A stretch of 64,000 bases of DNA, from the NCBI GenBank assembly GCA_964035545.1, contig OZ037769.1:5003929-5067928 (forward strand). The letters run 5' to 3'. The notes below the pieces were generated by a model, which was not told the origin of the DNA, searched no databases, and saw nothing but the letters and a program-made list of their open reading frames with translations. Position 1 is the first letter of the stretch; each line of letters starts with the position of its first letter. The stretch comes from Bugula neritina. Taxonomy: Eukaryota > Animalia > Bryozoa. Both the position numbers and the translations under genes were made by a program. Below are positions 22,909-61,779 of the stretch, one piece after another.

Positions 22909-25900
22909 ATGAGTCTGCAATGGACTGCAATTACGGGATTTTTGTACTTCGAGATGGCGATTATCTTCCTACTTTTACTTCCTTTCATTTCTGCTGCTAG
23001 GTAAGCCAACTTTTTACTTTACTGTCGACTGAAGTTATAATTAAAGTTGGATTTTGTTGTTTTTATTACCAAATTCAATTTGCGTTTCGCAGACAAAACA
23101 AAATAACAAAGTGAAAAGGGCAAACTGACACGCAAATTGATTTTGTTGAAACAGCTTGAGCTCGAGTTACTATTACTATTACTATTAGTATTAGACTTGG
23201 TGTGACACTTGGAGTTGAAGTTAATGTTGCTTTTAATGCCTCAGACTTAATCCAACAGTAACAACTATTACTAACAAGTAACAAGTGAATAACTGGTAGA
23301 TATTTACTGATTATTCATTATTCATTTTTCATATTATTACAGATTGCTACTACTACTAGTACTAGTAGTAGTAGTACTACTACTAGGTACTAGGCTACTA
23401 GCATATTGAAATTGATATTGATTTTGACAATAATCACTTTTTATATATTTATATTAACAATAATAATATTAAATATCCATGCTGTTCGGTGTTCATGTAA
23501 ACATTTATTTCTAATTTGTTATTTTATTATTTTACTATTTTTTGTCATAATCTTAATAATTAATTGTATCACTTATTGTAATAGTTTTAGTATTTTCGTA
23601 TATATATATTGTGGTAATAAATCACGGCTTCGGCCTCTTACGTTTATCAACTAACTCGAGCACGTTCTGTCTTTTCACGATAGCTGAAATAATATCACAA
23701 ATCAACATAAAACATGGTGCCCCGAGTCTAATTATTATTAATATTACACTGAAATAACATGGAGCAATTACTAGCGCCAAAACCATTAGCAGATGGACCG
23801 AATTTACCTGAGGAATGGAAGATTTTTAAACGTGACTTCGAACTTTTTTTAACTGCCACATCGAAAGATACAGCCGAAGGCAAAGTGAAAACTGCATACC
23901 TACTTAGAACTATCGGTCGCCGAGGCAACCAAATATACGACTCTTTCAACTGGACTGACAACAATGACAAAACTGACTATGACAAAGTTGTGACGCAGTT
24001 TGATGACTACTGCAAACCAAGAATAAACTTAGTGGCTAAGACTCACTCACTACTGACTTGTAAGCAAGGAAATAGAACTATTGACGAATTTTTGACTGAA
24101 CTACATACCATTGCAGGACTATGTGACTTAAAAGACATGTACAACCGACTGATACTACAAGCACTGATACTGGGAATTGAAAGTGACAAGATTAGAAAGA
24201 AACTGTTTGACTTGACTGACTTTGACAAAGCAATTGAACTCTGCAGACGAGAAGAAGCATCGGCTATTGACTACAAGACTATGACTAAGGATAACACATA
24301 TGGACTCGAACAAGTGAACTTGGTAAAACATAGACCTCCGACTCATCAATATCACTCTAATGACACTCGTAACACTGATAAACACAGAGGACAACTTTCA
24401 CACACTCACTCTCAGCCCAACGTCAGAAAATCAGTTGGTGCTTCTAGGTGTGGAAACTGTGGAGGCAATCACCCACCTCGAGCATGCCCAGCATATGGGA
24501 AACAGTGCAATCATTGCAAGAAATTTAACCACTTTGCTACATACTGCAGGTCACGCATGCATCATTATCGCGACTCAACCGAAACAGCCAATCAAGTCAC
24601 CTGGAATTACTCTTCAGACAGTGACTCTCAACATGTAAGTACTATCTCCACTACTGTACGAGATCGTAAATTATTAGCGATGCTCACTGCTAAGCAAGCA
24701 GATACTATTTATGACATTGAATTCCAACTTGACACTGGTGCATCATGCAATACTTTGAATACGATCGACTACGACAAGCTAGGTAAACCGAAACTTACAC
24801 CGACTGATACTGTACTAACTTTATATGACCAGAGCAAGTGTGCACCACTAGGGTGGACACGGATACAGATACTAAACAAGCAAGGATGTTACACTACATT
24901 AAAATTCCTAGTTGTGGAAACCACCCAACATAGCTTGCTGTCATGGAAATCATGTTTGCACCTGGATTTATTACAAATGCCCAGCACCAAAAGCGAGAAT
25001 GTAAACTTTGCCACTACTGACCCAGACCTTCAGACTTTACTGACTAACTTTGATGACATATTTACCGGACTTGGAAAGTTTGAACAGGAATATAGGATAG
25101 AGCTAAGACCTGAAGCTGTACCAGTGCAAGTCCGACCGCGGAAGGTGCCCTTGTCGATGAAATCAGATCTCATCAAGACTATTCTTGAACTAGAACAACG
25201 TCAAATTATCGCTAAGGTAGAAGCACCTACAGACTGGATAAGCCATCTACAACCAGTGCGCAAGCCTAATGGAAAGATACGCATCTGCATAGATCCGCAA
25301 CATCTCAATCAAGCAATTAAACGAAACCACGCTGTCATGCCAACATTGGAAGATGTTTTGCCACAACTCAACGGTGCCAAGTTTTTCTCCTTGTGTGACG
25401 CCAAAGAAGGTTTCTATCAAATTCCCCTAGCTGAGGAATCTACAGACTTGACAACTTTCTGGACTCCCATAGGAAAGTACAAGTACCTAAGGCTACCCTT
25501 TGGAATTGCATCAGCGCCGGAGGAGTTTCAGAGAAGGCTCACGGAAAATCTTGCTGGTCTTGATGGCATCACCATAGTTGCAGATGACATCCTAATTTTT
25601 GGAAGCACAAGGAAAGAGCATGATAGAAACCTTGAAGCGCTCTTCAAACGTGCTCGACAGACAGGACTGAGACTGAACAAGGAAAAATCCCGCTTCCTTC
25701 AGGACGAACTACCTTACATTGGACACATACTGACAACTAATGGACTTAAACCAGATCCTAACAAAGTAAAAGCCATTCTTAAGATGAAACCTCCCTCATC
25801 TCCACAGGGAGTAAAACGATTCCTTGGTCACATCACATACATGTCAAAATTTATTAGCAACCTAGCATCGGAATCTGAACCATTACGACGTTTACTGACA

Positions 25901-28900
25901 CAAGACAATGCTCAAGACTTTCACTGGACTGACGACCAAATGAACGCTTTTAATAGACTGAAGACCTTACTAACTGACTCAGAAACTCTACAATACTTTG
26001 ACTGCAACAAGCCAGTAACTATACAAACTGACGCTTCAAATGCTGGTGTGGGTGCAACACTCATGCAAGGAGGCAAGCCTGTAGCATATGCATCTCGCAG
26101 TTTAACAAAATCGGAACAGAACTATGTGCCACTAGAGCTTGAGTGCCTTGCCATAGTGTTTGGCACTGAACGCTTTGACCAGTATATCTTTGGTCACCAT
26201 GCTGTCACTATCCAAACTGACCACAAACCCCTTGTATCTATTTTCAGGAAATCCATTCATAAGGCATCTCAGAGGTTGCAGGCTATGCTTCTTCACTTAC
26301 AAAGATACCCCAACATTAAGGTAACTTGGCAAAAGGGTGCTGAACAAATCACGGCTGACTTACTCTCAAGAGACTCATACTTTGACTCCCCCAACTATCA
26401 ACAACTACCAGAACACATTTTTCACATTGACTCTCAAAATAATGATGCTCCTGTTTGTGACGACTTAATTGACAACATTAGGACTGCTACTGCACAGGAC
26501 AATGAACTTATGACACTGACAAACCTTATTAAACATGACTGGAACATTGCCAACTGCACAACTCACGACAAGTACAAACACTTTCAGGACGAACTATCTA
26601 TTGACAATGGCATTGTTTACAAAGGACTACGAGCCATTATTCCAAAGACACTCCAGAGAAAGTTTCTCCAACTACTTCACACCGGCCATAATGGGATTAA
26701 CTCCACACTAAGACGTGCCCGCCACACAGTGTTTTGGCTTGGCATCACCAATGACATCAAAAACAATATTGCTAACTGTCGACAATGTCAACTGGATGCT
26801 CCCCGGCAACAGAAGGAAACACTTTTACTCCACACAGTTCCCCAACAACCCTGGACCAAAGTAGGAATTGACTTGTTTGAATACAATCACACTCACTACA
26901 TTACTATTGTTGACTATACGACTGACTACCTTGAATATGACCGACTGGACAACCAAACAGCAGAGGCTGTTATCAACTCCATAAAGCGCTGTTTTGGACG
27001 CCTGGGAATACCCAGACAGGTTCACACTGACAACGGACCACAGTTTACCTCGCACCAGTTTTCCACTTTCAGCCAATCATGGAATTTCACACACACCACC
27101 AGCTCTCCATATCATCCTCAGTCCAATGGGAAGGCAGAGTCTGCTGTGAAGATAGCCAAACGTATACTCCGCAGATGTGAAGAGCCCGAACTTGCGTTAC
27201 TGGAACATCTCAACACCACCAAAGAAGGCCTGACGGCCAGCCCAATTCAGCAACTTATCGGAAGACCCACCAGGTCAGTACTCCCACAAGTTCGGCCAGA
27301 AACAGAGAACAACCAAGGTTGGTGGGAAAAGCAGGGCCGCAATGAAAAACTGCAGCAGAGATGCAATGACGGTGCAAGAGATTTGGCAGTGCTGAAAGAA
27401 GGGCAACCAGTTTTGGTTCGAGACTGGAGTCAGCACCGGAGAAAATGGCAGGAGGCGCAAATTAACAAACAATTGAGTAGCAGAGCCTATGCCATACAAC
27501 TTAACAACAACCTCTTTCGGAGAAACCGGCGAGACATCAGACCACTCGTCACGGAGCCAGCGAGTCCTGAGACACCAAAGGATCCTAAACAAAACGCTAG
27601 TAGTACCCAGGTTGACACCACCGAGAGCGCCAATCATAGCGACAATCTAAGACGTTCAACCAGAGAACGGAAGCCACCTAGTTGGATGGCAGACTATGTG
27701 CCCTCTTAAAACAATCATATCTAAATAGCTTTTTTTCTATTCTGTGGGAGATGTTCGGTGTTCATGTAAACATTTATTTCTAATTTGTTATTTTATTATT
27801 TTACTATTTTTTGTCATAATCTTAATAATTAATTGTATCACTTATTGTAATAGTTTTAGTATTTTCGTATATATATATTGTGGTAATAAATCACGGCTTC
27901 GGCCTCTTACGTTTATCAACTAACTCGAGCACGTTCTGTCTTTTCACGATAGCTGAAATAATATCACAAATCAACATAAAACACATGCTTGGCACAATAT
28001 ATAAATAATTAATATTTGGATTAAGGTATTAGCACAGTCATGCAATCCTGTTTAAAAAGACCTAGGTTGTCACTTGTCAATCTGACTATGAGACGTAATC
28101 AAGTATTCAAAATACCTACACATTCACAAACACATTGCCTGGTTAAAGTTAGTAGTTTAAGAACTCTGCATTAGGCTTAGCAGCTATATTTTTATTTTAG
28201 TTGGCAGAGAGTGTTCAACTCTGGTCTGGTAAGAATGGCTGGACTATATGCCAACTACTATTTCACTATGGCAATGGTGTTGCTAGGCATATGCTTTGCT
28301 GGTAAGTTTCAGGAGCTCTTCAGTTCAGCAGGAAGTTATGATACATTATGCTGACACCAAGTGACTGACCATGAACTGATATGATTAAACTGTTTTGGAG
28401 TATGTAATAGCTGTATATTTTCAATATACTTTCATTTTTTGAAAACATTTTATCTCAGATTGTTTTAATTTATGTAGATTCGATTCGGGAAATGGTGAAA
28501 TACACTCACAGCGACAAGGCGGAAGCTAGTATGGCCAACAACCCAAATACAGTTGATCACATTCACATGAAACTGTTCAGAGCGCAAAGAAACTTTTACA
28601 TTGCAGGATTTTCTCTCTTCCTGTGGTTGTATGTGTCTCTGTAAACATGTGCTTTTTCTGTTTCAGTATTTATTGAAATGACTACCTGCTCATGTAGGAT
28701 GAGACGACTGCTAATTTTTTTCCAATAGTTTTTTATGAATTTCCAACACCATAGTTTAATATTATATTATTTTCTCTCACTATTTTTGTAGAATTACCAT
28801 TATTACCAGCTGGTTTCTATGCCAATATTAGTTGGTATAACAGATGATAATGTTACAAATCTTGCATTGCAATTATATATCCCCACTTCTGTTTGCTCAT

Positions 28901-35727: not shown

Positions 35728-36470
<743 letters not shown>

Positions 36471-36954: not shown

Positions 36955-39900
36955 ATGTCAGTGCTACCAGGTAAGCCTAGGGCCACACTGTGCGTATTTT
37001 CGCATGCGAAAATTGAAATCACAAGTAGCAAAGGTGTCCACTGTGCGCGTTGAGAAAACGTTCGCACTTGTCGCTCTGCATTTTCAACGCAAGTGCGAAT
37101 CGTCTCTGTCGTCGTCACCTAATTGGCTGGTAGTTATTAAGCAAGCCCAATTTCTTTATTTTAGTGCTGAATTCCAGTAAATTGCGTTTTATTGAAAGCG
37201 AGTGCGATTTAAAAATGAAAGCTTTATTTATCACGCATCACTGACGCTACAGTGGACGCCTTTGCTACTTGTGGTTTCAATTTTCGCATGCGAAAATACG
37301 CACCGTGTGGCCCTAGGCTAAGACTTCATTTTCTATTTTTATTATTGACTTTCTTTTTCTTTGTATCTCATATATTGGAAGCTATTATTTTCAGTTTATA
37401 ATATGTAGGATATAGTATTATAACAGTAGCATATAGTAGTACGAGATTGCTTTATTTTATCAGCGTATGAATGTTGTGTTCGATGCTAAGTTAGGCTAGG
37501 ATAGTCATGATTCTATGAAAAGTAGGCTGAGGCCAATGTTCAATGAAACGACAAATACTAAACATCTAAAGCAGTCTACACAGCCTCTCTTGAGCTCCAT
37601 GTTAGAAAATGGCCAAGACTAATTTGCAGTAAAACATCTTAATAAAACTTTAGAAAAGAGAGAAAGTTTCAGGCTTGCTTCTCTCTTAAACTTACAAACT
37701 GCAACCATATTATTTTCAATTAAGCCTCCAAAAAGCTACATTTAGGGGCAGTAATAGATAAATTGAGGTAGCCTAAGTTCTTTAATTTTGTTATTAAATT
37801 TGAGTTTTGGCGGGTTGAAATTCTTGCTAGAACATAACTTCTTATGCTGCATTTCTAATCTGGAACACAGGTTTTTCTCAGTTTCTCTGTTACTGCACCT
37901 ACTCCATTTCTATGATCCCAGTGTGACTAGACTTTTTGTGCTGACACCATAATCTAGCATGTTGGCGCTTTGGCTTGTATATCCAGTCAAAGCTTCTAGT
38001 AAAATATATCAGCATCTCTTTTCTGCTGCTTTTTAAAGTTTCAAATGACTGCACAAAGAAGAATATTCATGTAAGGACACGGTGCTGTGAGAGTATTAGC
38101 ACTTCATTCACTAGTTTTCTTTATTATCTAACTTATCATGGTAAAATTTATATTATGTCATGATTCTGTATAACCATGTACTATAAGGTGGTGGCCATGT
38201 ACCCATTTAAGTTACCCACTCCGAATGAGTAAACATGGTGTAAAGCTGCATGTTGGGAACTTCATTCTGGATTCAATTACAAATACTTGGAGCCTGTTGT
38301 AATGATTTGGTTTAAGGGAAGCAGCACAGCTGCGCAATAGGAACTGCTGCTGTCTGTTACACGATTTAATATTGTAGCATCAGAGAGTGCTGTTCACCCC
38401 CCACCACCGCAGTACGGTCAACCACAACCACCACCACAGTATGGGCAACCACAACCGACACCTCAGTATGGGCAACCACAACCGACACCACAGTATGGGC
38501 AACCACAACCGACACCACAGTATGGGCAACCACCACCTCAGTATGGGCAACCACCACCTCAGTATGGACAACCACCACCTCAGTATGGACAACCACAGTA
38601 TGGGCAACCAGGTAGTTAGTTCGCACTTGACTTTCATAACCTATTAGACTTTAAGTACTTATTTGATTTATTATTATTTATTAATTTCATTTATTAAGTA
38701 TAAAATAACCTATAATAACAATTACGATTATTTGATTTTAAAAAAAATTGTAAGATATGAGAATGAGAACTATAGCTAGTCACATGATGTGTATAGCAAT
38801 ACTTCTGAATCCTGCCATAACTTTTTTAAATAACATTTTTAAGCAACACTTTTGTCATAGGGGTCATTTTACTTAATTTAGTACACACTAAAAATCTCCA
38901 GTTCTTTGCTATTTTGTCTAAAACCAATAAAGTATTAATAAATACTCTTAAATAATCAAGGTTCTCTTTAATTTTACTTGATTTCCTATGTTTTTCCTAA
39001 TTATTCAGCTACTTTCGATTGCGGACCGTTATGGTTTTTTCGTAACGGTCTGCAATCCAAATTAGCTAAATAAATAGGAAAAAGCATGGGAAATCAAGCA
39101 CAGTTAAGAAGAACCTTGATTATTTAGATGTATTTATTGATATTTTACTAATTATGGGCAAAAACCATGTTAATTAGCAGCTAAATTGTAAAAACTAGCT
39201 AAAATCTCGAGATTTCCAGTGTTTACTAAATTAAGTAAAATGACCCATAGGCTTCTTGTAATTTTTGTATCATGCCAGAATGCTATGTCATTTAATTGAA
39301 ACCTTGTTCTTCTAATACATTTTGAAAAGACAGTATAGTTTTCCTAAAACACTACTTACTATAAACTCTTAGTTTGTATAGACATCTGTTGATAAAATCC
39401 AGAGCTAGAGTTTTATAAATAGCCTTATATGCTGCAGTAGGGGTCTCTACCACGGTGATGGTAGGAGCACCCAGTCTTGTTCAAGGAGCCGTTCTAAGAG
39501 AGCATCCTACAAGCACCACCTGCCCAACATGCAGTGCCCAGATTGTCACTACCATTTCTAGAAAAGTTGGGACATTTGCTTTCGCTGCCTGCGCTGTTCT
39601 TTGTTTTATTGGGTAATTTCTTTGGTCTCTGTCATTATGAAATTTTAGTTTTAATGGTCTTTTTGTTGGAGAGACTTTTGCAAAAACCTTAGCAATGACT
39701 ACATTTTTAAATTGCAGCAATATCTTTGACATAAAATACATAATAATATGCAAATATATAAATTATCTAGTTTATTTAGTTAATGATCAATACAACCTAT
39801 AGCCAATATGATCCTAAGTGTCAGTTTTCATTGTTAATGTCTTTTTACATGTAATTTATACCATCTTTTCATAAAACAGTCACTATTCTCAATTAAAAAA

Positions 39901-40259
39901 GTTACATTATAAAACACTCACATGGGTTTATAATCACCATCTCTCTAAGAAACTCCTGATAGAAAGAGTTTGTGTTAGGTTGGCTCAAGAAGTTTTCTCT
40001 GTTGGAGTAATAGAGTATAATTATGACCCAATGCCCTTTCTAACACCACCAATGGTCTTTACAGGGATTCCAATTGCATTATTAAGTATAATACTTGTAT
40101 AATATCTTAATATATACTATTATAATATTAAGTTGTATTATTTTTATTTCTAGGTTAGGATTGTGCAGCTGGATTGTGTTTCTAGTCCCAGCGTGTCTGG
40201 ATGTGGAACATCACTGCCCTAACTGCAAAGCTCTAGTTGGAACACACAAAAAACTTTAA
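36955..40259 (+). CDS. LITAF/CDIP1-family zinc-binding membrane protein, ~176 aa. Exons 36955-36970, 38378-38611, 39438-39612, 40154-40259.
   Basis: LITAF domain: CPTC...hydrophobic stretch...DVEHHCPNC. Pro/Gln/Tyr/Gly-repeat N-terminus. Exon 1 (ATGTCAGTGCTACCAG|gtaag) was the phase-1 ATG exon I found compatible with exon 2 and is less certain than exons 2-4. Confidence 0.88.
36975..37318. mobile_element. MITE, 344 bp, PIF/Harbinger (Tourist)-like
   Basis: ~70-bp TIRs (GCCTAGGGCCACAC..., 3 mismatches) and direct TAA at 36972-36974 and 37319-37321. Confidence 0.9.
38861..39246. mobile_element. Fold-back MITE, 386 bp, with a 4-bp TSD (Sola2-like by TSD length and GRG termini)
   Basis: GGGTCATTTTACTTAATTTAGTA.../...TACTAAATTAAGTAAAATGACCC, ATAG on both sides (38857-38860, 39247-39250), arms complementary to a central hairpin. 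The superfamily assignment is tentative. Confidence 0.85.
39923..40070 (-). mobile_element. Degenerate SINE family copy in LITAF intron 3
   Basis: AATTATGACCCAATGCCCTTTCTAACACCACCAATGGTCTTT matches the family body. Confidence 0.65.
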
Positions 40260-45078: not shown

Positions 45079-48000
45079 ATGTTGTCTGCCAGAAGTGCTG
45101 TGTTGATAGTGCTAGGGGTTAGTAGCCTGGTGAGTATATTGCAATTATTAAATGTATTATATGTATTATATGTATTATATGTATTATATGTATTATATGT
45201 ATTATATGTATTATATGTATTACACACAAGTATAAATATGTGTATTATCGTATTATGCAAGTATAAAGCAAAGGGTGAACTTATGTGTATTTATAATAAA
45301 ATTTAAAAAAGTAAAAACTTTATAGATTCTTTATGGTACTGCTTTTATTACTTACAGGTTTTTAATGATACAGTGCAGCTTTATTTATTAGGATTTATTA
45401 TTATAGAAGTATATACTATAATAATATATGTATATCAAATTACATTACATGCAATATGATTTAACTTACAATGGTAAAGTAATTTAATTTGAGAACTATA
45501 AATTATATTGCAAAATTAAATTATAGGTCAAACAGCAATTAGTAATTTACTAACTGTAATAATACAATGACTTACATTAATTTGCAGATTCAAGTAACAG
45601 GTGGCAGCTGTATGCATGATAAGTATACTATTGTACCTGGACATACGGGATGTATTAACAAATCTCCATACGCTACTCACTTTGGTAAGTCAATTTATTA
45701 TATTTACTGTAATGTTATTTACTATACTTCTCTAAAAATAGATTTTAGACTTTAATGCACAAAAATTTAATTATAACAACTTTTGTGTTATGAATATAAA
45801 TTTTAATGACAATGGTAACTGTAAAATGCTTCAAATTGCGCTTTTTTTACTATAGTAAATTTGCAAATTCCCAAATAGTAAAAGCAGCAAGTTGTTTTCA
45901 CTTTATATAACTGGATTGTAGCTGACATGACAGATGACCTACAAGAAGAGATAGTACAGCAACACAACACTCTCAGGTCTCAACTCAATGCCACAAATAT
46001 GCAGAAAATGGTACGTTAACCGAGAAATACCTAAAGAAATTCTATTAATATAGCTTAAATAATAAAGTATATGAAAACTACATTTTATTGAAGTATATAA
46101 ACAGTATTCAAGTCTATTAATTGCATATATAAATATAAAAAAAATTAACTTTAGAGTTGCTACCTTGGTAAGAATTTCTAAAGAAAAGGTTTTTAGTGTA
46201 AGAAACTATAGGACTTATATATAACTATATAAAGTGTATTTATAAGTATAATATGAACAGCTATATAGCGTGTAAATACCTATATAAGTTGCATATAAGC
46301 ATAAGAAGTGTATATAAGTATATGAAATGTACCTCTACGATATTTATAAAATAGAATTATTGCATAACATATTTGTTCTACTTGATTTAATGATTCAACA
46401 TCTTTTAACACTCTACACTACACTCTATACTACAGAGCTGATGGTGCATGCATAAGAACGTCATATTACATGGTAAGGTTTATAATATATTCTAGGAGTG
46501 GGATGACGAACTAGCAGAGTTATCACAAAAATGGGCAGACAATTGCGAGTTCAAACATGACAGTGGCAAAAGAGCTATTCCAGGAAGGTTCACAGTTGGT
46601 GAGGATTATTTATTCTTAAACTCTGCTATAATATCAACTAAATAAAAATGTTGTACCTTAATTGTCAAAACTCCAAAATAGAAAATACTTTTTAAACAAT
46701 GATTTTAAGGTTACTGAATTACAGTTGTTTAAAAACCAGATTTTAATAACTTCTAATTTAATAAAGGTGAAAATGTGGGCTAAGGGGAAAGGTAAGCTAC
46801 AAAGAAAATGAGTTTATTTTATAGCATGTAATCGATTCTAAATAAAAAAAAATTATATCCCAATTAGAATGTCTGAATTAGAAAATAAAAATGCAAAATT
46901 ACCTTTAATAGATTTAGCCAATCAATATTTGACCTAGTTAATATTGTCTAAATTTTTATCAAGAGCTATAGCAAGAGGGCTCTTCATATTTGTAGGTCAA
47001 AACTTAGCCTTGGGTTACCAAACATGGAAAGACGTGCTGCAAGGGTGGTGGGATGAAATAGAACTGTTTCATTACGGCCACAGAGAACTCATGTCTTTTG
47101 GAGCAGTAGGACATTTTACTCAGATGGCATGGGCGGAGTCAGCTAAAGTGGGGTGTGGCTGGGCTGTGTGTACGAATGACGACATGATGAAGTGGTATGG
47201 AGGAAAATACTTCGTCTGCAACTATGGCGCAGCGTAAGTGCATCATTTGCTGCTGAATCATCGAATTTTATGGCAAAATTATTCTTGAAAAATTTAAAAT
47301 ATACATTGCAGACCTAGGTATATATATTCTTAGCTACTAGTTTGGCAGATATAATTGAATAAGCAATTGTGTGCAACTACATGACAACTAGAAACAAACG
47401 AGTTAATATATTGTTTAAATTATCTTGAAAAAAAAAATCAAAATTTTATTTTTATTTTCAAAAACTGGTAATTAAACTCTCATAAACTTTTAAAGCAGCA
47501 ATTTCTTTGATTTGAAACACTTTAAGTAAAATGATGCTGTGTAACTGTTCAAAAAAAAATTCTGGTTTACCTGAATATTCTTAAATTACCAGTCTAAGCA
47601 AATTAATTAAGTAAAGCAGTAACAAAATTTGATTAAAATCTTTAAAAAAAAAACTCACATATGTGTTCATAAACACAAATTTAGTGAGAAAACCCAATAT
47701 TCTGAGTTTTTTTAACAGTATTCAAGAACTAAAGAACAAGTGTATTCTTGTGAACTAAAGTAGCACAGGAGCAATTATGACTGGATGCCCTTCCTAACAT
47801 CACCAATAGCCTTTATGGGGATTCGAACCCATGACCTCGTGTTTACTAGGCAAACACTCTATCCCCTAGACCACGGCTGCTCCTTAGGTTTTGAGATTAT
47901 ATAAGGATTGAAAATTATTTAAGTATTTCATAGTTTTAAAGCTGTATAGCTATAAACTCTAAACTCTTTTAAAAGTATTGTCTGCTTTAAAGCATTTCCC

Positions 48001-50109
48001 ATGTGTACCCAACCAAAATTATTTGCTTACTATAAAATTTTATTTACAAGGTTCAAACTATAAGTATTTTTGAAAAAAGTTATTGAAATTTTTTTCTCAG
48101 CTTTCAGCCCTTAACTGCTAAAAATTATATTAACACTTTTTTTTCAAAAAATTTCTCTTCTGATTTGTATATTTTCAATAAGTCTTTCGCAATTGGTAGA
48201 GGCAATTTACATTGGTGGACGCCATACAATGTGACAACCATAGATGGAGATAGAAGAGAATGTGGCTCATGCCCAGACACTTGCAACGAGAATGGACTAT
48301 GTGGTAAGCCTTGTAATTAATTTAATTGAAATAAAGCTTCAATACTTTTGTTTTTATTAGTAATCAAACAGAAAAAGTTCCACAATTCAATGTTTAATGT
48401 GAGAAATCTAAGCTCTAGATGAATATAAGATTTAACTTTACCCGCAAATATCTACTTTTTTAACTTACTTCAATCTAAAAGATATAAATGGAGATTTTTT
48501 GTTCTAAGTGTAGCAGGAAACAACATTAGTATGTATATAATTTGCACTATGTTCTTAGATTGTGGAGGTAAGGTTTGTGGTAATGGAGGGACGCTGGATA
48601 TCAACACATGTCAATGCAAATGCACTAAGCCATACCATAAAGCAGACAATTGTGAATGTAAGTATAATATGACATCTTGAGGCAAGTGCCTGCTTGCCGA
48701 CATCTTGCTATAAGTTATATAAAAACTTATAGCACATGTTTTCTGATGTAAAAGAATAGTCTACAATTAATGGTTTACTAACAACCCAAATAATTTAGTA
48801 AATGCAGCATCTGTAGTATATTTTATATTTTACTCTCAGCGTATGTGGCTTTTATATTTAGTTATTCAGTTTAATAATTGCACAGGCATAATTATGGCCA
48901 GCACCAGAACCTATGATTCACGTTTACATTAGATTCCTAGCCCAATGTTGATTGTACTGTTCAGGTTCAATAACCAAGTCCTGAATCAATCAGAGCGTGT
49001 AGTCTATTTGATATCATCCAGTCTATTTGTCATAATAATTGATTGATTTTCACCGTGAAAGCTTGTGGTAAGAAATGAATAAAATTAAATAGTTGTTTTA
49101 AACAGATGATTGGTTATAGGAAGTGATTTAGCTGTCATGTCTCATTTGTAATGGAACATTTGAAACAAACATATTGCAATATATTCTCAACAATTTAGGT
49201 AATTACTTCACAGCTACTTCAAATCTCACTGAATTAAAACGTTTTTAAAATCAAAATCTAATTTATATTTGAATCATTTGAATTTTTAGTTTCTAATCAT
49301 CTAACAAAAATAATAGCGTTAAACATTTGTTCATTTGTATTATCTACAAATCTACAAGTATTAGTCATTAAGTGAAAGTTTTAACTTTGAAGTATAGCAG
49401 TATACGGACTTTGTGCAAAAGTCAATCAAGGTCAATGTGGTTTTAAATTGGTAGTGGATGACATATATAATGTGTTACATTTTTTACAGTGGATTGTGAC
49501 TTGGCCATTGATTCTCCCCACTGCGGAACATTCTGGCAGTACGCCCAATGTGACATATACCAGAACGTACCTAATGAATGTCCTAATATGTGTGGCCTGT
49601 GCCCATTGGCTGATTACAGGCAGGGGATCGCAACTTCTAATGCACCAACCACTACAACTACACCAACAACTACAACTACAACAACAACTACAGCCACACC
49701 AACAACTACACCAATAACTACAACAACTACGCCAACAACTACAACTACACCAACAACTACTTCTACATCAACAACTACAGCAACACCAACAACTACATCA
49801 GCTATCTCTTCCACAACACAAGAAATATCAACTGAGAAGCCATTGGCCATCTCTACACGGTCACCACGGTTACCACCACCAACAACATTGTCAAATATCT
49901 TGCAGTCTCGTTCCACAACCCCCACCACAACTGATCTGAAGGTTTCCACCACAAAACCATTTAACATTCATGTAGAACAAAAAGAAGGAAAAACATTAAT
50001 TAGCATTCCACACAGCATCTCTATAAACAGCAATGAGGCTGTGAAAGGGGTGCAGCAGCTCTCAAGTAAATTATATTCAACCTTGGTCCTCATTTTAAAG
50101 CTTGTATAA
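45079..50109 (+). CDS. Secreted CAP/SCP (CRISP-like) protein: signal peptide, CAP, hinge, EGF-like, ShKT-like, Thr-rich mucin stalk and hydrophobic C-terminus; 466 aa. Exons 45079-45129, 45588-45684, 45922-46010, 46496-46598, 46996-47233, 48200-48303, 48559-48657, 49490-50109.
   Basis: HNTLRS...NMQKMEWDDELA...WADNCEFKH, GQNLA, WWDE, GHFTQMAW (CAP1), VCNYGAAGN (CAP2), CGSCPDTC...LC hinge, CGNGGTLDINTCQCKC and ECPNMCGLC. 1401 nt, in frame. Confidence 0.92.
45152..45221. repeat. 9-bp tandem repeat (ATGTATTAT)n in intron 1 of the CAP gene
   Basis: Directly visible. Confidence 0.9.
47761..47883 (-). mobile_element. SINE family copy (tail missing) in a CAP-gene intron
   Basis: Clean B box GGTTCGAATCC on the minus strand plus the family body. 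Confidence 0.85.
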
Positions 50110-50457: not shown

Positions 50458-53400
50458 TATACATAATAAGATATATCTAACTTTTTTGAAACACCTTTTT
50501 ATATGACAAGAATTTGAAATAAAATTCAATAAGCTTGATTGATTAATTTTAGTTTTTAAGGTGCATTTATCAAATAAAACTTGGGTATATGGTACAAACT
50601 AATTAATTATACATATATGATTGATAATATTTTATAAGAAATTGTGCTACCTCAATGCTTATAATCTATCTAACAATAAATAAAACTTATTAGCATATGA
50701 CATTGAATAACATAAGTTATAACCACATTTTAATTCATAGTGTACTTGATTTGGATAGTGCATATATAAAAAAAATATTGCAAACAATTAAACTTTTCTA
50801 ACTTCAAAATATTAGTAGAGTATATTTCTGCTAGTAAGTAAAGAGCACATGTTAACTAACTCTTTCTTCATTGCTAGCTGATCATTAAAATACATGCATA
50901 TTATAAACTATTGGTAACAATACAGTGACCATTATTTTACGTGTATGTATAATATATTATAAACTGTTGCTAACAATCTATTGGACAAATTTACTGAGAT
51001 AGTTTTTACTAAGATTCAGAGCAATACGTATATTTAATTAAACACGAGAATCAAATTAAATAGCTGACTTCTTTTCAAACTTTTTCATGCAATATAAAAA
51101 TTAAAATTATCAGACATCTTTTACTAATTGGTAATGGCAACTTGTACATTATAGATAAACCACAAGTAATATGGTAGCATATAAAAACAAAAAGCTTCAA
51201 ACTTTAAACATTGTGCTTTAAGTAATAAGTAACAAAATTGTAATTCTAAATTTATAGAATTTCTTTGAAGTCTTTTGCCTTTCAACTGGCATCCATAAGC
51301 AAATAATGCAATACTTGCTTTTCTAATGTTTCAAAGTGGTGCGCTTTTCAATTAAACAAAAATTGTAGTGTAAGTTCTAACATAAATGTATACACTTTAC
51401 TGTGCCTTACTTCTCTCCCCCCTCCCCTGTTTTTATATTACACAAAGTTAACAAAACAAACTTATTTCCATAGACATAATATGTTTTTATATTTTCATAT
51501 TCAGTATTTTGTATATGGCCCATTCTGCTCAAGAGTTGTCTTTCCAGAAAGACTTAGCTACCTGTAACCATTAGAACATAAACTATGTTTTTTATATTTT
51601 CACAAAGCAGTTTCTGCTGTAATTGGAGCCGCAACTTTTTTGAAAAATTTAGAAAGATTTCTATCGATGAATATTTTAGTTTTTCCTGTAGTCACATTGA
51701 ATATATGTAAATACCCAATCAAAACAAGCTATACATTTTTTGCATACTAATAATTAATTCAGACTGAAGGCACTTGGGCATCATTGCAAACAGAAAATTT
51801 CATGTTAATTGAGTGCTCCTATTTGAATTTGAGCTATATGGCAACAAATTTAGATCTTTTGTGACACGAAGGTGGTACATGTGCGTCACTATTTGGTGCC
51901 TAATACGAAAGTCTATTTCTCTGAGAGGATAACATCCGCTTCTCCTTTTAATTATTATTGTGAGCTTAATCAATAGAGTTAGGGTAAAAAACTTCAAATA
52001 TTATTTTATAATTAAACAAGACATTGACTTTCTTATGCAAGTTTCTTGTCCCATCTTATGCCATTTACAACCTGCCTTTAATTTGCAGGTATGCTAATAA
52101 ATGAAGATTGTAGAAATAAAGACAATATAAATAGTTGCTATATAAATGAATGCTAAATAAATGAATACTGTAAATATAATGCTGACATGCATAAATTTAT
52201 AACTAGAATAGTACTTTCCATTTTAAAATCAGCAGAATGTGGGCTTAAAAAGTCAACTAGCTATGTAGTCAACATTCAAGTATAATTTTAGTTTGAAAAA
52301 GCAATTTCATTGGAATGTATATAAACTAAAAACAAATGTATTGTGCTGTAAGTATAAATGGTACTCTAAAACTACCATCTTGAAACGCAACTAATTTTTT
52401 TATTGTAAAAATATTAAATAATTAACAGTGAATTTAAATTTGATTTTGCATGGAACAAGTATAAGTTTCAAGTGCTTTAATGGTGCAAAAAAGTGCTAGG
52501 GAAAGAAAGACCTCCAATCTGTATTAGAAAAGCTGTTTTTAGGTTTTTTTTAAGTTATAGTATATCTTTTTAAACCCTGAATAGCGTCTAAATATAATTG
52601 ATACAGTTTAAAATAAATAATTATACAGGAGACAAGTATAGCCTCATCAGCAAATATCAGGTCTACCATTTCATTCAGTGACCGCAACTTAATCCTCACC
52701 TAAGGGCACGTGTCTAAAGCATAACTAAGTTAAGCTGAAAAATTACTTCCTATTAGTTTTAATAAGAAGTCAAACAATATTGATAATATTTCTTTGGCAT
52801 CATGTCAATCAATATTTATAATATATTAATATAATATATTATTATATTATAATATAATGCACCTATCTTAAACTAGGTGTATTTTTGACACTGTCATTAA
52901 TTTGTATATAAGCCGGCTCAGAAATAATCATCTTTATTGAACATAATTACTAGCTTATAGCTTTAATAAAATATATATGTTTTTAATTTCTATAATTTGA
53001 TAGTTTGAGGTCAAGGAAGCAGCTGCATAGTCATAGACTTTCAATTGACGTATAACTCAACTCACTCCCTAATATAAATACTTATGGTTGCTGCGTTGCA
53101 CCCAAAGTATTGTTTGCTGGCAGCACGATTTAAAATATCTCCAAGCAGCGAATCATCAATCTTTAAGCAAAGAATCATTTGGCTGAGTTTGAAAATTGTT
53201 ACTAAAAATATTTTTCTAAATTTTTTTCAGTAACAACTATAAAACATAATTAAGTCTTTGTGAAGTATTTTTATTAGTTACTGCATTTTTACATATTATT
53301 GCAAATTAGATAAATACATAAAGCAATTCCATTTTTGTTATTAATTTTGTAAGAAGTTAAATTACATAACAAATTGTCATAAGATCATGAACATATATGT

Positions 53401-53951
53401 GTGCTCACATGAATTCCTTTATTTCCTTGCAATTATAAACTTATTTTGTCATCTCTTCCCTGGAGTTTAAGGAGACTCAAAGTCTAGTATCATAATAATT
53501 TTGATCTGCCACAGCAAGCTCAGTACATCTTTTTGTCCATATCTTTTTCCAAACTTAATTGGTTCAATTATGAAAAATAAAACTTTTATATTGATTTTAG
53601 TGTAGCAAAATGAGATATATATCATATATTTATAACGAAAATATCATCGAGATCTTAATATCATGTAGATTCTGTTAAAATTATAATATTTTCACATAAA
53701 TCAACGTTAGCAAAGAAAAAGGGTTGCTGTAAATTATACATGTATAATAATTTAACGATTCCTTCTCAAAATTATGTTAGCCATATAAATATACTCCAAA
53801 ATGGCTGCATTGACAGTATAGGTGCTCTGTAAATAAATCACAGTGGACAAACTTTCTGTGGACCAAATAAAATACAAGATACTATTCAAGTGTTGTACAA
53901 TTTTAAGTATAAGTAGGAAAGGCGTGCAGAAAAGTTTACATTAACTATGAC

Positions 53952-54396
53952 GGTTTCATCCCAGATAGACGCTTCCCAGTTAGGCGCTATTTTTTATTTT
54001 GGTACCATAATAATGTATATACCTATGTAACTGTTGTATTGATTGATAAATAGCTAATATGCTAATAGCTATAATAGCTAATATAAAGTATCTAGAATAA
54101 TAGTCCACATTTCACGGTTTTGTGTGAGGCAAAACACAGTAATATGTTAATAATAGACATTATTTTTAATGAATACTTATTAACGAAGTGTTTTTTCTAG
54201 CAACAAGAAGTATAGAGTGTGCAAAATTATTAAGTTAATGCAGATCAGCGACATTTATTTATGTGCTAGATAACAAACAATTGATCCAAGTTTATTTAAA
54301 TATACAGATTATATATTTCAATAACATTAAAATTAATTATCCATAAACTATATATTTTGACAAGATAAATAAATAGCATCTAACTGGGATCACACC
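53952..54396. mobile_element. Non-autonomous DNA transposon, 445 bp, 8-bp TSD, GG...CC termini (Merlin-like)
   Basis: ACTATGAC at 53944-53951 and 54397-54404; imperfect ~22-bp TIRs GGTTTCATCCCAGATAGACGCT / AGCATCTAACTGGGATCACACC. Confidence 0.75.
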
Positions 54397-55396
54397 ACTA
54401 TGACTGCCTTAGTTCAGATGTTACAGGATTGGTTGTCACAAAAAATAAAGTTATGAGAGAATTGAAGGCAAAAAATAGCTAATCACAGTGTTCCATAGGC
54501 TATGTTTCATGTAGCTTCAACCTAGCTAACCTAACCTAACTGAAGTGAACTCAATTTTGAAAGTTTATAAAGATAAATTATTGAGATTTTACTGCACATT
54601 CTATATTTTTACTGTCAGCTGATAAAACAACAATCATTTGACAGTGAGCAGTTCATTTTCTTTATTGCCAACCAAATCCATTTCTTCAACACTCAACCTA
54701 TGTTTATATTTTATATGTTTATATATATGCATTGCAATAATACTGTAAATAATTATACAGTCCCCAAACAGTATAAACTGTATCAACTTCATAGTTATTT
54801 CATTTACTGAATTGTCAAGTGCTTTTTTACATATTTCGTAATTTACTTTCATGTTATCTGTAAAATAGTAATTTGGCTGCTAGATAAACTGGTAGCTATA
54901 TTGCAGTGTTGAAAATCTTTCAAAATTCCCAAAAATAAATTTGTCATATCTGGCAAGTTGAATTGATTAAATTACTGCAGTTTACTGCAAAGTAAGAACT
55001 GTTCATTGACATGCAGAGTGACTAAAAAGCCTGCAACTTGGTAATAGAGGATATTTCCTCTTCCAAATTTCACTCAATTAGAAAAGTTAATTTAAATTCC
55101 ACACAAAAAAAGAGTAGAATTAGATTCTACTTCAAATATTTCTGGATATTAAATCATATTGATTTTCTTGTGTGGGCTACCTCTCTCCCAGCCCTCATTA
55201 CAGCAAGGGTATTAAATTAGGTACTTAGGCTATTAATCAATGTATAGCCGACAAATAGTTGGTGAGAGAAAGACGTGTGGCAATCACTTAAAAAGCTGAG
55301 TAAATACCACAAATTATTACTAATATTCCTCTATGGGCTGAGGTCTGGTCTTGAGCAACATACTTTGAAAATACAGCAGGGAGCCTTGGCATAGTC

Positions 55397-58300
55397 ATGC
55401 AGCTATCCGCTTACATTTTCATTTTGGTTGCTGCTAAGCAGGTATTTATATAATTACTCCTATTCATATAATGTAAAGTGTTTTTTATGTTTATCCTTTA
55501 TTCAAAAGATTGACTTGCATGCATATATTCTTGAAAAATTCACTTCTTTTGTGCATGCAGTTATTTTATAAAAATTAAAACAAAAATTACATAGAAATAG
55601 TTAGAATGACAATATATTTATTTTCTGGTAATTCATTTGCCAACCCTGGATATTTTATGTAAGCAAGCTTTCGCATAGAAGGCTGATAATGTGAACAAGT
55701 AATCTGTATTAACACGTCTCTTACTCTGATTGCACGGCTAGCATGGTTCTTCACCTATCTCTGCTCTGTCCTGTTAGCGTAGCGGGTGGCTGCCGTAGGC
55801 CTAGCTTAATTAAACTTCTCTATCTAATCCCGTCTTGGGCTTTTTTTAGACTAGCATGCGTAATCTAGTGTAAATCGAAAGTCTAGTCAAATTGGAATAT
55901 TAGATGGCACCAATCTTGAAAATGTGCATGTATAATAAGGATAACGTTGTTTGAAAGATTTATGCTTTTGTTTTTGAAAATTTTATTGCCTTAATGTATG
56001 TATATTCAAAAATACAACTGAAAGCTTTTGACGTTATACCAACTCAAATTCTAAGGAAATTTTATCCAAAGCCTTTTCCCCTCAAACATGTTAAAGCAAA
56101 AAGATTAATTTTTTTTTAAAGTATCTCATTTGTGGATTATTTTGCACTAATCTGTTTATAGTAAAATTAAATTGCATATTATCATAATGTGTACACTTCA
56201 GCTAAACTTTTGTCAAAACTAACAATGGTTAATAAGAGTTATTTTGGCCAACTATACTACATACTGCTTGTATACTGCAGGTATCAGAAACATTAGTCTC
56301 TGCAGACAGCAACCCTCCGCAAAGCAGTCATCACACAACATGGCCGCCATCTAATCTTCTGCAGACTCAACCATCTGGAAATACTCAAGCAGTGAGACTT
56401 TCTCAAACTTCTTATTTTAGAAGTCCTAACCACCATAGCATACCATCATCCCCCAGTTATAATCAACATCAGCCTTCATTTTTTCTGACTCCGACCCCAG
56501 CACTACACAGAGTTCCATCTTCTGTACCATGCACCACCACACCATCATCTGCACCATATAAAGCTTCAGTACTACCCCTAGGCCCTTCTCCTGTACCACA
56601 TAGTGCTCCTTTTCCTGTACCTTACAGAGCTCCTGTACCATATACAGCCCCTTCTCCTGTACCTTACAGAGCCCCCTCTCCTGTACCTTACAGAGCCCCC
56701 TCTCCTGTACCTTACAGAGCTCCTGTACCATATACAGCCCCTTCTCCTGTACCTTACAGAGCCCCCTATCCTGTACCTTACAGAGCTCCTGTACCATATA
56801 CAGCCCCTTCTTCTGTACCTTACAGAGCCCCCTCTCCTGTACCTTACAGAGCTCCTGTACCATATACAGCCCCTTCTCCTGTACCTTACAGAGCCCCCTA
56901 TCCTGTACCTTACAGAGCTCCTGTACCATATACAGCCCCTTCTCCTGTACCTTACAGAGCCCCCTCTCCTGTACCTTACAGAGCTCCTGTACCATATACA
57001 GCCCCTTCTCCTGTACCTTACAGAGCTCCTGTACCATATACAGCCCCTTCTCCTGTACCTTACAGAGCTCCTGTACCAAATATAGCTCCAACCTCTCTAC
57101 CATATGATACAACTACACAATACAGGCCACATATAGCTTCACAAGCTCCACTTCACAAAGCTTCACAAGCCTTACCATCGATTAGCACCTCAAAGCATAT
57201 ACAAAGCAGATCCTCACTTTTATCTCACATGCAACCGCAACATCCACCACACAGGCAACAAATATATGCTCACAATGTACAAAATAGAAGCTCTGTATCA
57301 CAAAGTTTGAAAGCCTCTCAAGAAGTATCACCTTACAGAGCCCCTTCTCCTGTACCACACACAGCTTCTTCTCCTGTACCACACAGAGCTCCTGTACCAT
57401 ATACAGCGCCTTCTCCTGTACCTTACAGAGCCCCCTCTCCTGTACCTTACAGAGCTCCTGTACCATATACAGCCCCTTCTCCTGTACCTTACAGAGCTCC
57501 TTCTCCTGTACCTTACAGAGCCTCCTCTCCTGTACCTTACAGAGCTCCTGTACCATATACAGCCCCCTCTCCTGTACCTTACAAAGCTCCTTCTCCTGTA
57601 CCATACAGAGCCCCTTCTCCAGCACCTTACAGAGCTTCTGTACCATACAGAGCTCCTGCACCATATACAGCTCCTTCTTCTGTACCATATATAGCACCAA
57701 CTTTTCTACCATATGATACAACTACACAATACAGGCCACATTTAACTTCACAAGCTCCACTTCACAAAGTTCCGCAAGCCTTACCATCGAGTAGCACCTC
57801 AACGCATATACAAAGCAGATCTTCACTTTTATCTCACATGCAACCGCAACATCCACCACACAGGCAACAAATATATGCTCACAATGTACAAAATAGAAGC
57901 TCTGTATCACAAAGTTTGAAAGCCTCTCAAGAAGTATCACCTTACAGAGCCCCTTCTCCTGTACCACACACAGCCTCTTCTCCTGTACCACACAAAACCC
58001 CATCTCCTGTACCTTACAAAGCTCCTTCTCCTATACCTTACAGAGCTCCTTCTGCGGTACCATACAGAGCCCCTTCTCCTGTACCTTACAGAGCCCCCTC
58101 TCCTGTACCTTACAGAGCTCCTGTACCATATACAGCCCCTTCTCCAGTACCATATACAGCCCCTTCTCCAGTACCATATACAGCCCCTTCTCCTGTACCA
58201 TACAGAGCCCCTTCTCCTGTACTACACACAGCCACTTCTCCAGTACCACACACAACCACTTTTCCTGTACCATACAGAACCCCATCTCCTGTACCTTACA

Positions 58301-61300
58301 GGGCCCCCTCTCCTGTACCTTACAATGCTCCTTCTCCTGTACCATACAGAGCCCCTTCTCCAGCACCTTACAGAGCTTCTGTACCATACAGAGCTCCTGT
58401 ACCATATATAGCACCAACTTCTCTACCATATGATACAACTACACAATACAGGCCACATTTAACTTCACAAGCTCCACATCACAAAGTTCCGCAAGCCTTA
58501 CCATCGAGTAGCACCTCAACGCATATACAAAGCAGATCCTCACTTTTATCTCACATGCAACCGCAACATCCACCACACAGGCAACAAATATATGCTCACA
58601 ATGTACAAAATAGAAGCTCTGTATCACAAAGTTTGAAAGCCTCTCAAGAAGTATCATCTTACAGAGCCCCTTCTCCTGTACCACACACAGCTTCTTCTCC
58701 TGTACCACACAAAACCCCATCTCCTGTACCTTACAAAGCTCCTTCTCCTATACCTTACAGAGCTCCTTCTGCGGTACCATACAGAGCCCCTTCTCCTGTA
58801 CCTTACAGAGCCCCCTCTCCTGTACCTTACAGAGCTCCTGTACCATATACAGCCCCTTCTCCAGTACCATATACAGCCCCTTCTCCAGTACCATATACAG
58901 CCCCTTCTCCTGTACCATACAGAGCCCCTTCTCCTGTACTACACACAGCCACTTCTCCAGTACCACACACAACCACTTTTCCTGTACCATACAGAACCCC
59001 ATCTCCTGTACCTTACAGGGCCCCCTCTCCTGTACCTTACAATGCTCCTTCTCCTGTACCATACAGAGCCCCTTCTCCAGCACCTTACAGAGCTTCTGTA
59101 CCATACAGAGCTCCTGTACCATATATAGCACCAACTTCTCTACCATATGATACAACTACACAATACAGGCCACATTTAACTTCACAAGCTCCACATCACA
59201 AAGTTCCGCAAGCCTTACCATCGAGTAGCACCTCAACGCATATACAAAGCAGATCCTCACTTTTATCTCACATGCAACCGCAACATCCACCACACAGGCA
59301 ACAAATATATGCTCACAATGTACAAAATAGAAGCTCTGTATCACAAAGTTTGAAAGCTTCTCAAGAAGTATCATCTTACAGAGCCCCTTCTCCTGTACCA
59401 CACACAGCCTCTTCTCCTGTACCACACAGAACCCCCTCTCCGGTACCATATACAGCCCCTTCTCCTGTACCACACACAGCTACTTCAGCTCCTGTACCTT
59501 ACAGAGCTCCTGTACCATATACAGCCCCCTCTCCTGTACCTTACAGAGCCCCCTCTCCTGTACCTTACAGAGCCCCTGTACCTTACAGAGCTCCTGTACC
59601 ATATACAGCCCCTTCTTCTGTACCATATATAGCTCCAACTTCTCTACCATATGATACAACTACACAATACAGGCCACATTTAGCTTCACAAGCTCCACTT
59701 CACAAAGCTCCACAAGCTTTATTATTGAGCAGCACCTCAACCCATACACAAAGTAGATCTCCACTTTTATCTCACATGCAACCACAACATCCACCACACA
59801 GGCAACAAATATATGCTCACAATGTACAAAATAGAAGCTCTGTATCACAAAGTTTGAAAGCCTCTCAAGAAGTATCATCTTACAGAGCCCCTTCTCCTGT
59901 ACCACACACAGTCCCTTCTCCTGTACCACACACAGCCCCTTCTCCTGTACCACACAGAGCTACTTCAGCTCCTGTACCTTACAGAGCCCCCTATCCTGTA
60001 CCTTACAGAGCTCCTGTACCATATACAGCCCCTTCTCCTGTACCTTACAGAGCCCCTGTACCTTACAGAGCTCCTGTACCATATACAGCCCCTTCTTCTG
60101 TACCATATATAGCTCCAACTTCTCTACCATATGATACGACTACACAATACAGGCTACATTTAGCTTCACAAGCTCCATTTCACAAAGCTCCACAAGCTTT
60201 ATTATTGAGCAGCACCTCAACCCATACACAAAGTAGATCTCCACTTTTATCTCACATGCAACCGCAACATCCACAACACAGGCAACAAATATATGCTCAC
60301 AATGTACAAAATAGAAACTCTGTATCACAAAGTTTGAAAGCCTCTCAAGAAGTATTATCTTCTAATCACAAAGTAATTCAGCCTCCCTCACAACAACCAT
60401 TGTCAACAACAACACATCAGCCTTTTAATAACGTGCCACAAACCTTCACCCACAGACCTGCTTCTTACCCTGTGCCACATTCATATAGCCATGGAATGCT
60501 TCCTTACTCTGATTCAAGAGTATCCCAGTCATCAACGTATAGAGCACAACCTTTACCACCAGCACATTCTACACGCAGGAACTTCCAAACCACTATGCAC
60601 TTAGGAGAACCTCCAGCTCTATCATCTCCAAACTCACAGCCTTCTTCATACAGGACAACTCCAGCTGCTACACAAGAGACAGTGCAGCTAACAGCTACTC
60701 ATCTGCCAGCTCACGATCAAAATCATTCTCCTCTATTATACCCTACACAAACAAGTCTGCCACTTTCTTTACCTACTGCCCCTCAAGTATTTAGACAGAA
60801 TGTAGTCAAGATGCCACCAAGCCATACAGAACCATCATCTTTTAACCATCACTCTATAACAAGCAAGCTAACACACGGTGGATCGACTAGTAGAGCTAAC
60901 GGAAGACCAAGTAGTGCAGAAAGCATTGCACCAAGCAGCAGGGCAGATAGGTGGAGAAGTATTGCAGAAAACAATGAGCTGACTAGTCAAACTAACAGAT
61001 GGGAAAGCATTACAGAAAGCAGTGTACCAACCAGGTCCACTAACAGATGGGAAAGTGTTACAGAAAGCAGTATACCAACCAGGTCCACTAACAGATGGGA
61101 AAGTGTTACAGAAAGCAGCGTACCGACTATCCCCACTAACAGATGGAGAAATCTTGCAGATAACCATGAGCTAGCTATCCAGACTGATAGGAGACCAAGT
61201 AGTGTGAGAAACAGTGAGATACCTAGTAGAACTAACAGAAGACAAAGTAATTCACCAAACAGAGCACCTAACACCAGAACCGATAGAAGACAAAGTAATC

Positions 61301-61779
61301 CACCAAACAGAGCGCCTGACACCAGAACTAATAGAAGGCAAAGTAATCCACCAAACAGAGCACCTGGCACCAGAACCAATAGAAGGCAGAGCAACTCAGG
61401 AGGTCAAAGGTCCAGCATAAGTGGCAGAGACCGAGCTTCAAACAATCGAAGAAGACTTCCATGCACTGATGATGACGAGGATTGTATATCAGGTGATGGA
61501 ATTCCTCTACCCGTAGAGATTACAGATGATGAGCCGGCAGACAGACTAGATGAAGGTCAGAATACTAACAGATTCCGTAATACTATCGTCAACAACTTCA
61601 GACCAAGTTTCATGCTAAATTCTAACCAGCCACTTGACCGTCTGAGGAGCAATGAGCCTGTGCAGAGTCGTCAAGTTAATGTTGCAGGACATGCTCAACT
61701 AAGGAGCTTGGCGAATACAAATTATCCATATGTCTTTTTTATGATTGCTACTGCTTTGGTTAGTTGGATGTTCTTCTGA
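55397..61779 (+). CDS. Uncharacterised 1847-aa secreted Pro/Ser/Tyr/Arg-rich repetitive protein with a C-terminal GPI-signal or TM segment. Exons 55397-55441 and 56281-61779.
   Basis: Exon 1 MQLSAYIFILVAAKQ|gtattt splices in phase 0 to ctgcag|GTATCAGAA, which is in frame with the 1795-aa ORF. All repeat periods are multiples of 3. Ends YPYVFFMIATALVSWMFF*, with AATAAA at ~61795. Confidence 0.85.

Follow-up and report, generated by a model that had tools for sequence, protein, structure and literature searches.

Mucin regions rich in Pro, Thr and Ser (PTS) are recognized at a threshold of 40% Ser+Thr with more than 5% Pro. Mussel adhesive proteins contain ~20 mol% Tyr (PMC9027906), glycosaminoglycan chains begin on Ser-Gly beside acidic clusters (PMC8418075), and lineage-specific low-complexity secreted proteins are common in lophotrochozoans (PMC13425148). 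Here we analysed a gene of Bugula neritina located at 55397-61779 of a 64,000-nt window (contig OZ037769.1 of assembly GCA_964035545.1, positions 5,003,929 to 5,067,928). This cheilostome bryozoan is a model fouling species, in which the gene represents a concrete, single-copy and transcribed candidate for a coat or cuticle protein, with a candidate glycan site missed by a first-pass annotation of the DNA. That annotation described the product as a secreted, membrane-tethered and non-globular structural protein. The predicted anatomy, the splicing and the purifying selection are consistent with this description, whereas its catechol branch is weakened. We tentatively propose that the protein may be a lineage-restricted scaffold of a bryozoan extracellular coat, namely the cuticle, the ectocyst or another epidermal envelope.

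A transcribed two-exon gene under purifying selection

The gene of 1847 aa lies on the plus strand and consists of two exons: a 45-nt exon 1 with ATG 55397, 5′ of which an in-frame stop was found, and an open exon 2 (56281-61779). As the first in-frame Met of exon 2 lies only ~315 codons in, an upstream exon is needed. A 433-nt RNA-type contig of run X1 aligns to 55344-55437 and 56277-56575 at contiguous record positions, corresponding to an 839-nt skip, and the splice joint was placed at 55441|56281 after resolving a shared 4-nt word (a 4-nt ambiguity). This spliced contig bears out the intron of the two-exon model and documents the transcription on which the first-pass annotation had made its reading depend. 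Runs X3 and X5, seemingly duplicate deposits of a single data set, yielded just one 156-nt piece of the gene at low depth. Among ten runs guessed to be RNA, 5-12% of the words of the 3′ part were present, compared to 17-19% expected for a diverged allele at full cover of this part. Contig depth gives no ranking of expression, and read mapping was restricted to the non-repetitive 5′ part of the gene, with no read support for the array region. The putative signal peptide has a 9-residue hydrophobic core with a mean Kyte-Doolittle hydropathy of 2.66, and cleavage is likely after Ala23, as judged by eye.

Comparison with a second allele (the JGI form) over 540 codons gave a dS of 0.167, a dN of 0.062 and a dN/dS of 0.37 (p 5e-7). 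There is a single coding indel of 48 nt between the alleles, and the 3′ flank has non-triplet indels. In run X11 (DNA; window 53200-56575), two haplotypes differ by up to ~7%: one agrees with the window, and the other has many variants in common with X1. On this basis, the JGI form probably represents an allele, or else a sibling type within one species complex, so that the dN/dS ratios would partly reflect within-species variation. The X11 haplotypes might diverge because heterozygosity is very high, because the animal is a hybrid of cryptic types, or because the sample was mixed.

An assembly artefact is unlikely, as the assembly tzBugNeri2.1 was built from high-fidelity (HiFi) reads (PMC11480708) and an independent short-read assembly displays an identical module design. 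A non-coding minisatellite mistaken for an open reading frame (ORF) was also rejected, given the splice contig, the dN/dS, a triplet-only spacing and a locus-private repeat word. All 91 anchor-to-anchor distances in the repeat are multiples of 3, and 51 of the 52 genome-wide matches to its core DNA word fall inside the gene; other Pro/Tyr-like matches in the genome proved to be unrelated 24-nt satellites. Overall, the gene is real: it is transcribed, spliced and under purifying selection.

Arrays of Tyr-containing units are separated by Tyr-poor spacers

The first-pass annotation had described about 1250 residues as dominated by octamer and hexamer units. These units are real, with 73 octamers (26 exact) and 25 hexamers, but the arrays comprise only 760 of the 1258 residues (60% of the repeat region), whereas the other 498 belong to six 83-aa spacers rich in Ser, Gln, His and Leu. 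Pro makes up 34% of the array residues, with 13% Ala, 12.5% Val, 11.8% Tyr, 11% Ser and 7.6% Arg, but just 0.7% Lys. In line with the reported scarcity of Asp, Glu, Gly and Cys, none of the four occurs in the arrays. The proposed recurrence of Tyr every 6-8 residues holds inside the arrays but not elsewhere, with Tyr amounting to 6.5% over exon 2 as a whole and 3.6% in the spacers. Similarly, the basic residue expected directly after Tyr in the arrays is Arg in 55 cases, but Lys in just 3, and Thr takes this place 22 times. Position 7 of the octamer is occupied by Tyr (57 times) or His (16 times) and nothing else, in agreement with the occasional replacement noted earlier. Between alleles, the arrays vary in both the number and the order of their units.

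The protein has a Pro+Ser+Thr content of 42%, an isoelectric point of 10.4, less than 3% Asp+Glu and three Cys in all; Lys accounts for 1.2% overall, and the translation contains no run of three Pro anywhere. Ser+Thr makes up 17% of the arrays, and a level of 25% is attained in 29% of windows; the maximum of 38 per 100 aa falls below the 40% of strict mucin PTS regions.

The carboxy-terminal region carries an invariant block and a candidate glycan site

The last 473 aa, which the first-pass annotation left undescribed, contain the most conserved part of the protein. Outside the block of aa 1721-1795 we counted 69 replacements and 37 silent-only codons between the alleles; the contrast with the block, which was chosen after the fact, gave a Fisher p of 6e-5 and a longest-run permutation p of 0.001. 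This block holds two of the three Cys and the acidic cluster preceding Ser-Gly. The arrangement agrees with that of proteoglycan cores, in which Ser-Gly lies near an acidic cluster: Ser1752-Gly follows five acidic residues and is invariant between alleles. A pattern written after the fact from the Cys-acidic-Ser-Gly motif was found in none of 200,000 shuffles. In fly neurexin, an experimentally shown heparan-sulfate region has a similar acidic two-cysteine loop flanked by Ser-Gly (PMC6173057), a likeness that appears to be a short-motif resemblance and not homology. A xylosyltransferase gene is present in the genome. The tightest allelic constraint sits on a putative glycosaminoglycan-type site near the predicted anchor, not on the Tyr arrays.

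Judged by eye and hydropathy, the protein resembles glycosylphosphatidylinositol (GPI)-anchored proteins in its layout, with a putative N-terminal signal, a small candidate omega residue, a polar spacer and a tailless hydrophobic end. The anchor signal named by the first-pass annotation accordingly corresponds to a 15-residue hydrophobic stretch at the very end of the protein, a candidate signal of the GPI type. In the other allele, the stop lies at the identical position and the hydrophobic end is kept. JGI contig L030 contains an exact 11-nt duplication (L030:2505-2530) that breaks the frame and would remove the anchor signal if real; this loss is probably an assembly slip, as the duplication is absent from L029. 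Contig L029 has its own frame-breaking exact 49-nt duplication (L029:259-356), probably an assembly slip as well. Upstream of the block, no canonical Rx[KR]R site is present in the Arg/Asn-rich repeats (61228-61395). The absence of a globular domain was borne out by the lack of any Pfam match and, as weak evidence, by a single-sequence fold of the last 556 aa computed with no alignment, which gave a mean predicted local distance difference test (pLDDT) score of 41, with low confidence except for the terminal helix.

Oxidases in the genome point to possible dityrosine rather than catechol chemistry

Compared to the composition of adhesives based on 3,4-dihydroxyphenylalanine (DOPA), with ~20 mol% Tyr and abundant Lys, the protein is poor in both Tyr (6.5%; arrays 11.8%) and Lys (1.2%; arrays 0.7%). 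Three tyrosinase searches, which set lower bounds and had no positive control, found a tyrosinase domain (PF00264) at one locus (G000:C7:2084000-2094000), inside a kielin-like gene with many cysteine-rich, VWC-like exons. A loss of canonical tyrosinase in Bugula is possible, judging from these searches. Haem peroxidases, by comparison, gave 87 exon matches, equivalent to about 15 or more loci, and animal-type (laccase-type) multicopper oxidases about 11 loci, mostly in two clusters. Peroxidases and multicopper oxidases occur in tandem clusters on C9, C3, C7 and C5. One multicopper-oxidase domain is encoded by a 619-aa frame without introns on a small scaffold (G000:C13:35207-35560), possibly a bacterial contig in the assembly.

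Given the many peroxidases and multicopper oxidases and the one tyrosinase-domain locus, dityrosine would be more likely than DOPA if Tyr is modified at all. The catechol-cation branch of the first-pass annotation is weakened by the low Tyr, the near-absence of Lys from the arrays, the His in 16 of 73 octamers and the single tyrosinase-domain locus (a lower bound), whereas its branch of a dityrosine-crosslinked or cuticular protein stays plausible in view of the oxidase loci. Nothing found here directly supports an adhesive role, and some of the findings speak against one.

The gene has no recognizable relatives in the libraries searched

Genome searches revealed no paralogues, and thus no paralogue family. 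The spliced model was searched one exon at a time, and the arrays were searched in the own genome and Pfam. For the non-array parts, a word search and a full HMMER scan of 1.84 billion cluster representatives found no distant homologues; two weak HMMER matches proved to be unrelated repeats. The only match among the representatives is a JGI metagenome fragment, 83-84% identical and lying on two contigs. Pfam, PDB and the protein atlas gave no match either. An ortholog of known different function, against which the first-pass annotation had weighed its proposal, was not found in the non-array searches. As the libraries may hold few bryozoan proteins, the gene family could still be bryozoan-wide. 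The literature searched contained nothing specific on the repeat motif or on Bugula adhesive or tyrosinase data, and described no bryozoan cuticle or glue protein. The sequence and the combination of features are new to the libraries searched, while the design principle is already known.

Proposed function and alternatives

We propose, tentatively and as possible rather than probable, that the protein is a GPI-tethered, disordered, cationic scaffold with a membrane-near glycan, which is shed at RxxR and cross-linked through dityrosine of its arrays into the cuticle or an epidermal coat. The protein would enter the secretory path and gain a GPI anchor near Ser1824, and a xylosyltransferase would start a heparan- or chondroitin-type chain at Ser1752 beside the acidic disulfide loop. 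A furin-type convertase might then cut the RxxR cluster (aa 1665-1716), freeing a repeat part of roughly 180 kDa. The extended Pro-rich arrays could bind sulfated polyanions via Arg and His, and would eventually become anchored in the coat as a peroxidase or laccase joins their Tyr into dityrosine, not through tyrosinase-made DOPA.

Several points weigh against this proposal. The putative signal peptide is short and contains Lys14 and Glu18, and 16 of the 73 octamers carry His where Tyr would stand. The RxxR sites are minimal and their repeat block has a dN/dS near 1, a Pfam scan detected no chitin-binding domain, and the oxidase families are common in animals, none of them adjoining the gene. 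Ser-Gly motifs alone over-predict proteoglycans (PMC8418075). In addition, the proposed secretion, anchoring, glycan attachment, cleavage, cross-linking and tissue are inferences.

The product could instead be a mucin-like or part-time proteoglycan surface protein of the glycocalyx or mucus, in which a GPI-anchored, O-glycosylated stalk carries uncross-linked Tyr and the arrays merely serve as spacers of variable length. The one large repeat exon, the allelic differences in array number and order, the Pro+Ser+Thr content, the strongest constraint on the Ser-Gly site and an upstream neighbour that likewise has a Thr-rich stalk and a hydrophobic end all fit such a protein. We nevertheless consider it rather unlikely, as Ser+Thr is low in the arrays and below 40 in every 100 residues, octamer position 7 is invariably Tyr or His, and the net positive charge is atypical of mucins. 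An envelope protein of reproductive or larval stages, such as the coat of an oocyte or embryo, the lining of the ovicell or the surface of a gamete, which peroxidase would harden as it does insect vitelline-membrane proteins, appears quite improbable. The Pro/Ala/Ser/Tyr octamer may recall fly vitelline-membrane repeats; the full spliced contig in one study and a short low-depth piece in others hint at stage- or tissue-limited expression, and the orphan status fits too, but the dN/dS gives no overall sign of positive selection.

A wet adhesive or coating that relies on DOPA as mussel foot proteins do, such as the glue of the larval internal sac or rhizoid, would use the 55 Tyr-Arg pairs of the arrays as catechol-cation units. 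The basic, Pro-rich tandem repeat (isoelectric point >10) and the biology of a fouling animal with adhesive larvae speak for it; however, it is very unlikely in view of the Tyr content, far from ~20 mol%, the scarcity of Lys in the arrays, the GPI-type tail and the one tyrosinase-domain locus found inside a kielin-like gene (a lower bound), and nothing ties expression to attachment. Least expected of all is a skeletal organic-matrix protein that frames calcification, in which the acidic loop or its glycosaminoglycan would bind calcium and the cationic rod would organise the sheet. Shell proteomes of lophotrochozoans typically include repetitive orphans of low complexity (PMC13425148) and the acidic segment is invariant, but the protein is strongly basic with its few Asp+Glu. 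A bryozoan skeletal proteome for comparison was not found in the literature.

A more far-reaching version of the dityrosine scaffold is improbable. In this version, no structural protein of the cuticle or attachment layer of a bryozoan would have been identified before, and the protein would be a convergent animal counterpart of extensins: a GPI proteoglycan that is shed by a convertase, condenses with sulfated glycans through its Tyr-Arg and His units and is then cured by a peroxidase or laccase, the animal possibly lacking a working tyrosinase. If so, wet coating or adhesion would be achieved without DOPA. Should the protein be structural and an active tyrosinase be truly missing from the genome, the coating chemistry of bryozoans would depart from the mussel model on which antifouling and glue design are based. 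If it is not structural, the gene encodes another lineage-specific mucin-like surface protein.

Features of the gene and its neighbourhood

Table 1. Coordinates of the gene features in the window
Feature	Position	Strand	Description
Exon 1, extent of RNA contig	55344..55441	+	At least 53 nt of 5′ untranslated region, ATG 55397, 15 codons forming the n-/h-region of the putative signal peptide; RNA-type contig, run X1
Intron	55442..56280	+	839 nt, phase-0, GT-AG; absent from the X1 contig, full coverage in DNA-type run X11
N-terminal segment	56281..56583	+	aa 16-116; remainder of the putative signal peptide, then Ser/Pro/Thr-rich; single copy in the genome
Six modules	56584..60357	+	aa 117-1374 (1258 aa); a Pro/Ala/Val/Tyr/Ser/Arg array and then an 83-aa spacer in every module
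Six arrays	56584-57081, 57331-57690, 57940-58407, 58657-59124, 59374-59628, 59878-60108	+	
First spacer	57082..57330	+	249 nt; Ser 18%, Gln 13%, His 9%, Tyr 3.6%; no protein-atlas match
Remaining five spacers	starts 57691, 58408, 59125, 59629, 60109	+	Copies differ by 1-22 nt
Recent tandem duplication, modules 3 and 4	57919..59352	+	717 nt, 2 mismatches
Ser/Pro/Thr/Gln-rich unique stretch, then three 16-aa repeats with RWES	60358..61227	+	Repeats at 60991-61151; two copies in the other allele
Arg/Asn-rich 16-aa repeats	61228..61395	+	Four minimal RxxR convertase-type sites (aa 1665, 1681, 1697, 1713); putative cleavage
Invariant block	61396..61620	+	aa 1721-1795 (75 aa); 0 replacement and 10 silent changes between alleles
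Candidate glycosaminoglycan attachment site	61462..61500	+	Acidic loop Cys1743-Cys1750, then Ser1752-Gly
GPI-type signal	61705..61779	+	Ser1824 as candidate omega site, then a short polar spacer and 15 hydrophobic residues (61732-61776) up to the stop

The gene is flanked by a CAP-domain gene, LITAF and BAP31 upstream, and by INSIG and a proprotein convertase downstream. The upstream neighbour (window 45079-50109) encodes a signal peptide and a CAP/SCP domain, along with cysteine modules that by eye are EGF-like and ShK-like; its stalk is rich in Thr and its end hydrophobic, and the product is likely a second GPI-anchored surface protein. The LITAF-like gene (window 38387-40259) has a Pro/Gln/Tyr/Gly repeat exon. 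INSIG and the furin-like convertase gene (G000:C5:5075000-5089000) lie on the minus strand ~10-23 kb past the stop; the proximity of a convertase to an RxxR-bearing gene may be chance.

A young Ty3/Gypsy-type long terminal repeat (LTR) retrotransposon at window 23483-27983, with two identical 232-bp LTRs, a 5-bp target duplication and a 1316-aa gag-pol ORF, immediately precedes a BAP31 exon and is probably intronic. High-copy dispersed repeats at window 53950-54330, upstream of the gene, and 55750-55830, in its intron, reach summed contig depths of up to 47,000 and 2,700, respectively, compared to ~100. A nearly perfect AC microsatellite of 723 bp occupies window 35731-36453.

Comparison with known systems

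Similar to mussel foot protein-1 of Mytilus, the Bugula protein is large and basic, with a Pro-rich tandem repeat in which Tyr stands beside a cationic residue. However, it has less Tyr, Arg instead of Lys, and 83-aa Ser/Gln/His spacers that interrupt the arrays, in addition to a GPI-type tail and a Ser-Gly site; the two share no sequence homology, and no canonical tyrosinase was found in the genome by searches that give lower bounds. Membrane-tethered mucins share with it one large exon of variable number tandem repeats, allelic length variation, disorder and the 42% Pro/Thr/Ser, but the Bugula protein has low Ser+Thr in its main repeat, is rich in Tyr and Arg, and lacks a SEA, VWD or similar domain in Pfam.

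The insect CPLCP cuticular proteins, though much shorter, are likewise secreted, of low complexity and rich in Pro, Val and Tyr. Among the four residues that characterize this family, Pro, Val and Tyr are abundant in the Bugula protein but Lys is not, and the latter is predicted to be membrane-tethered, with no homology detectable from its non-array parts. As in plant extensins, a Pro-rich rod would present Tyr at regular intervals for possible cross-linking by peroxidase; the Bugula protein differs from them in lacking Ser-Pro4 or any Ser-Pro3-5 motif, a three-Pro run and sequence homology, and in being an animal protein. At its base, the membrane-proximal acidic two-cysteine loop beside Ser-Gly resembles the neurexin stalk and glypican-type sites, and the GPI-type end is as in glypicans, whereas LNS and EGF domains, a cytoplasmic tail and the cysteine-rich glypican domain are absent from a protein with only three Cys. 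The short motif is probably common to neurexin through convergence. By analogy, the repeat would work like a CPLCP protein or an extensin, and the base like a GPI proteoglycan.

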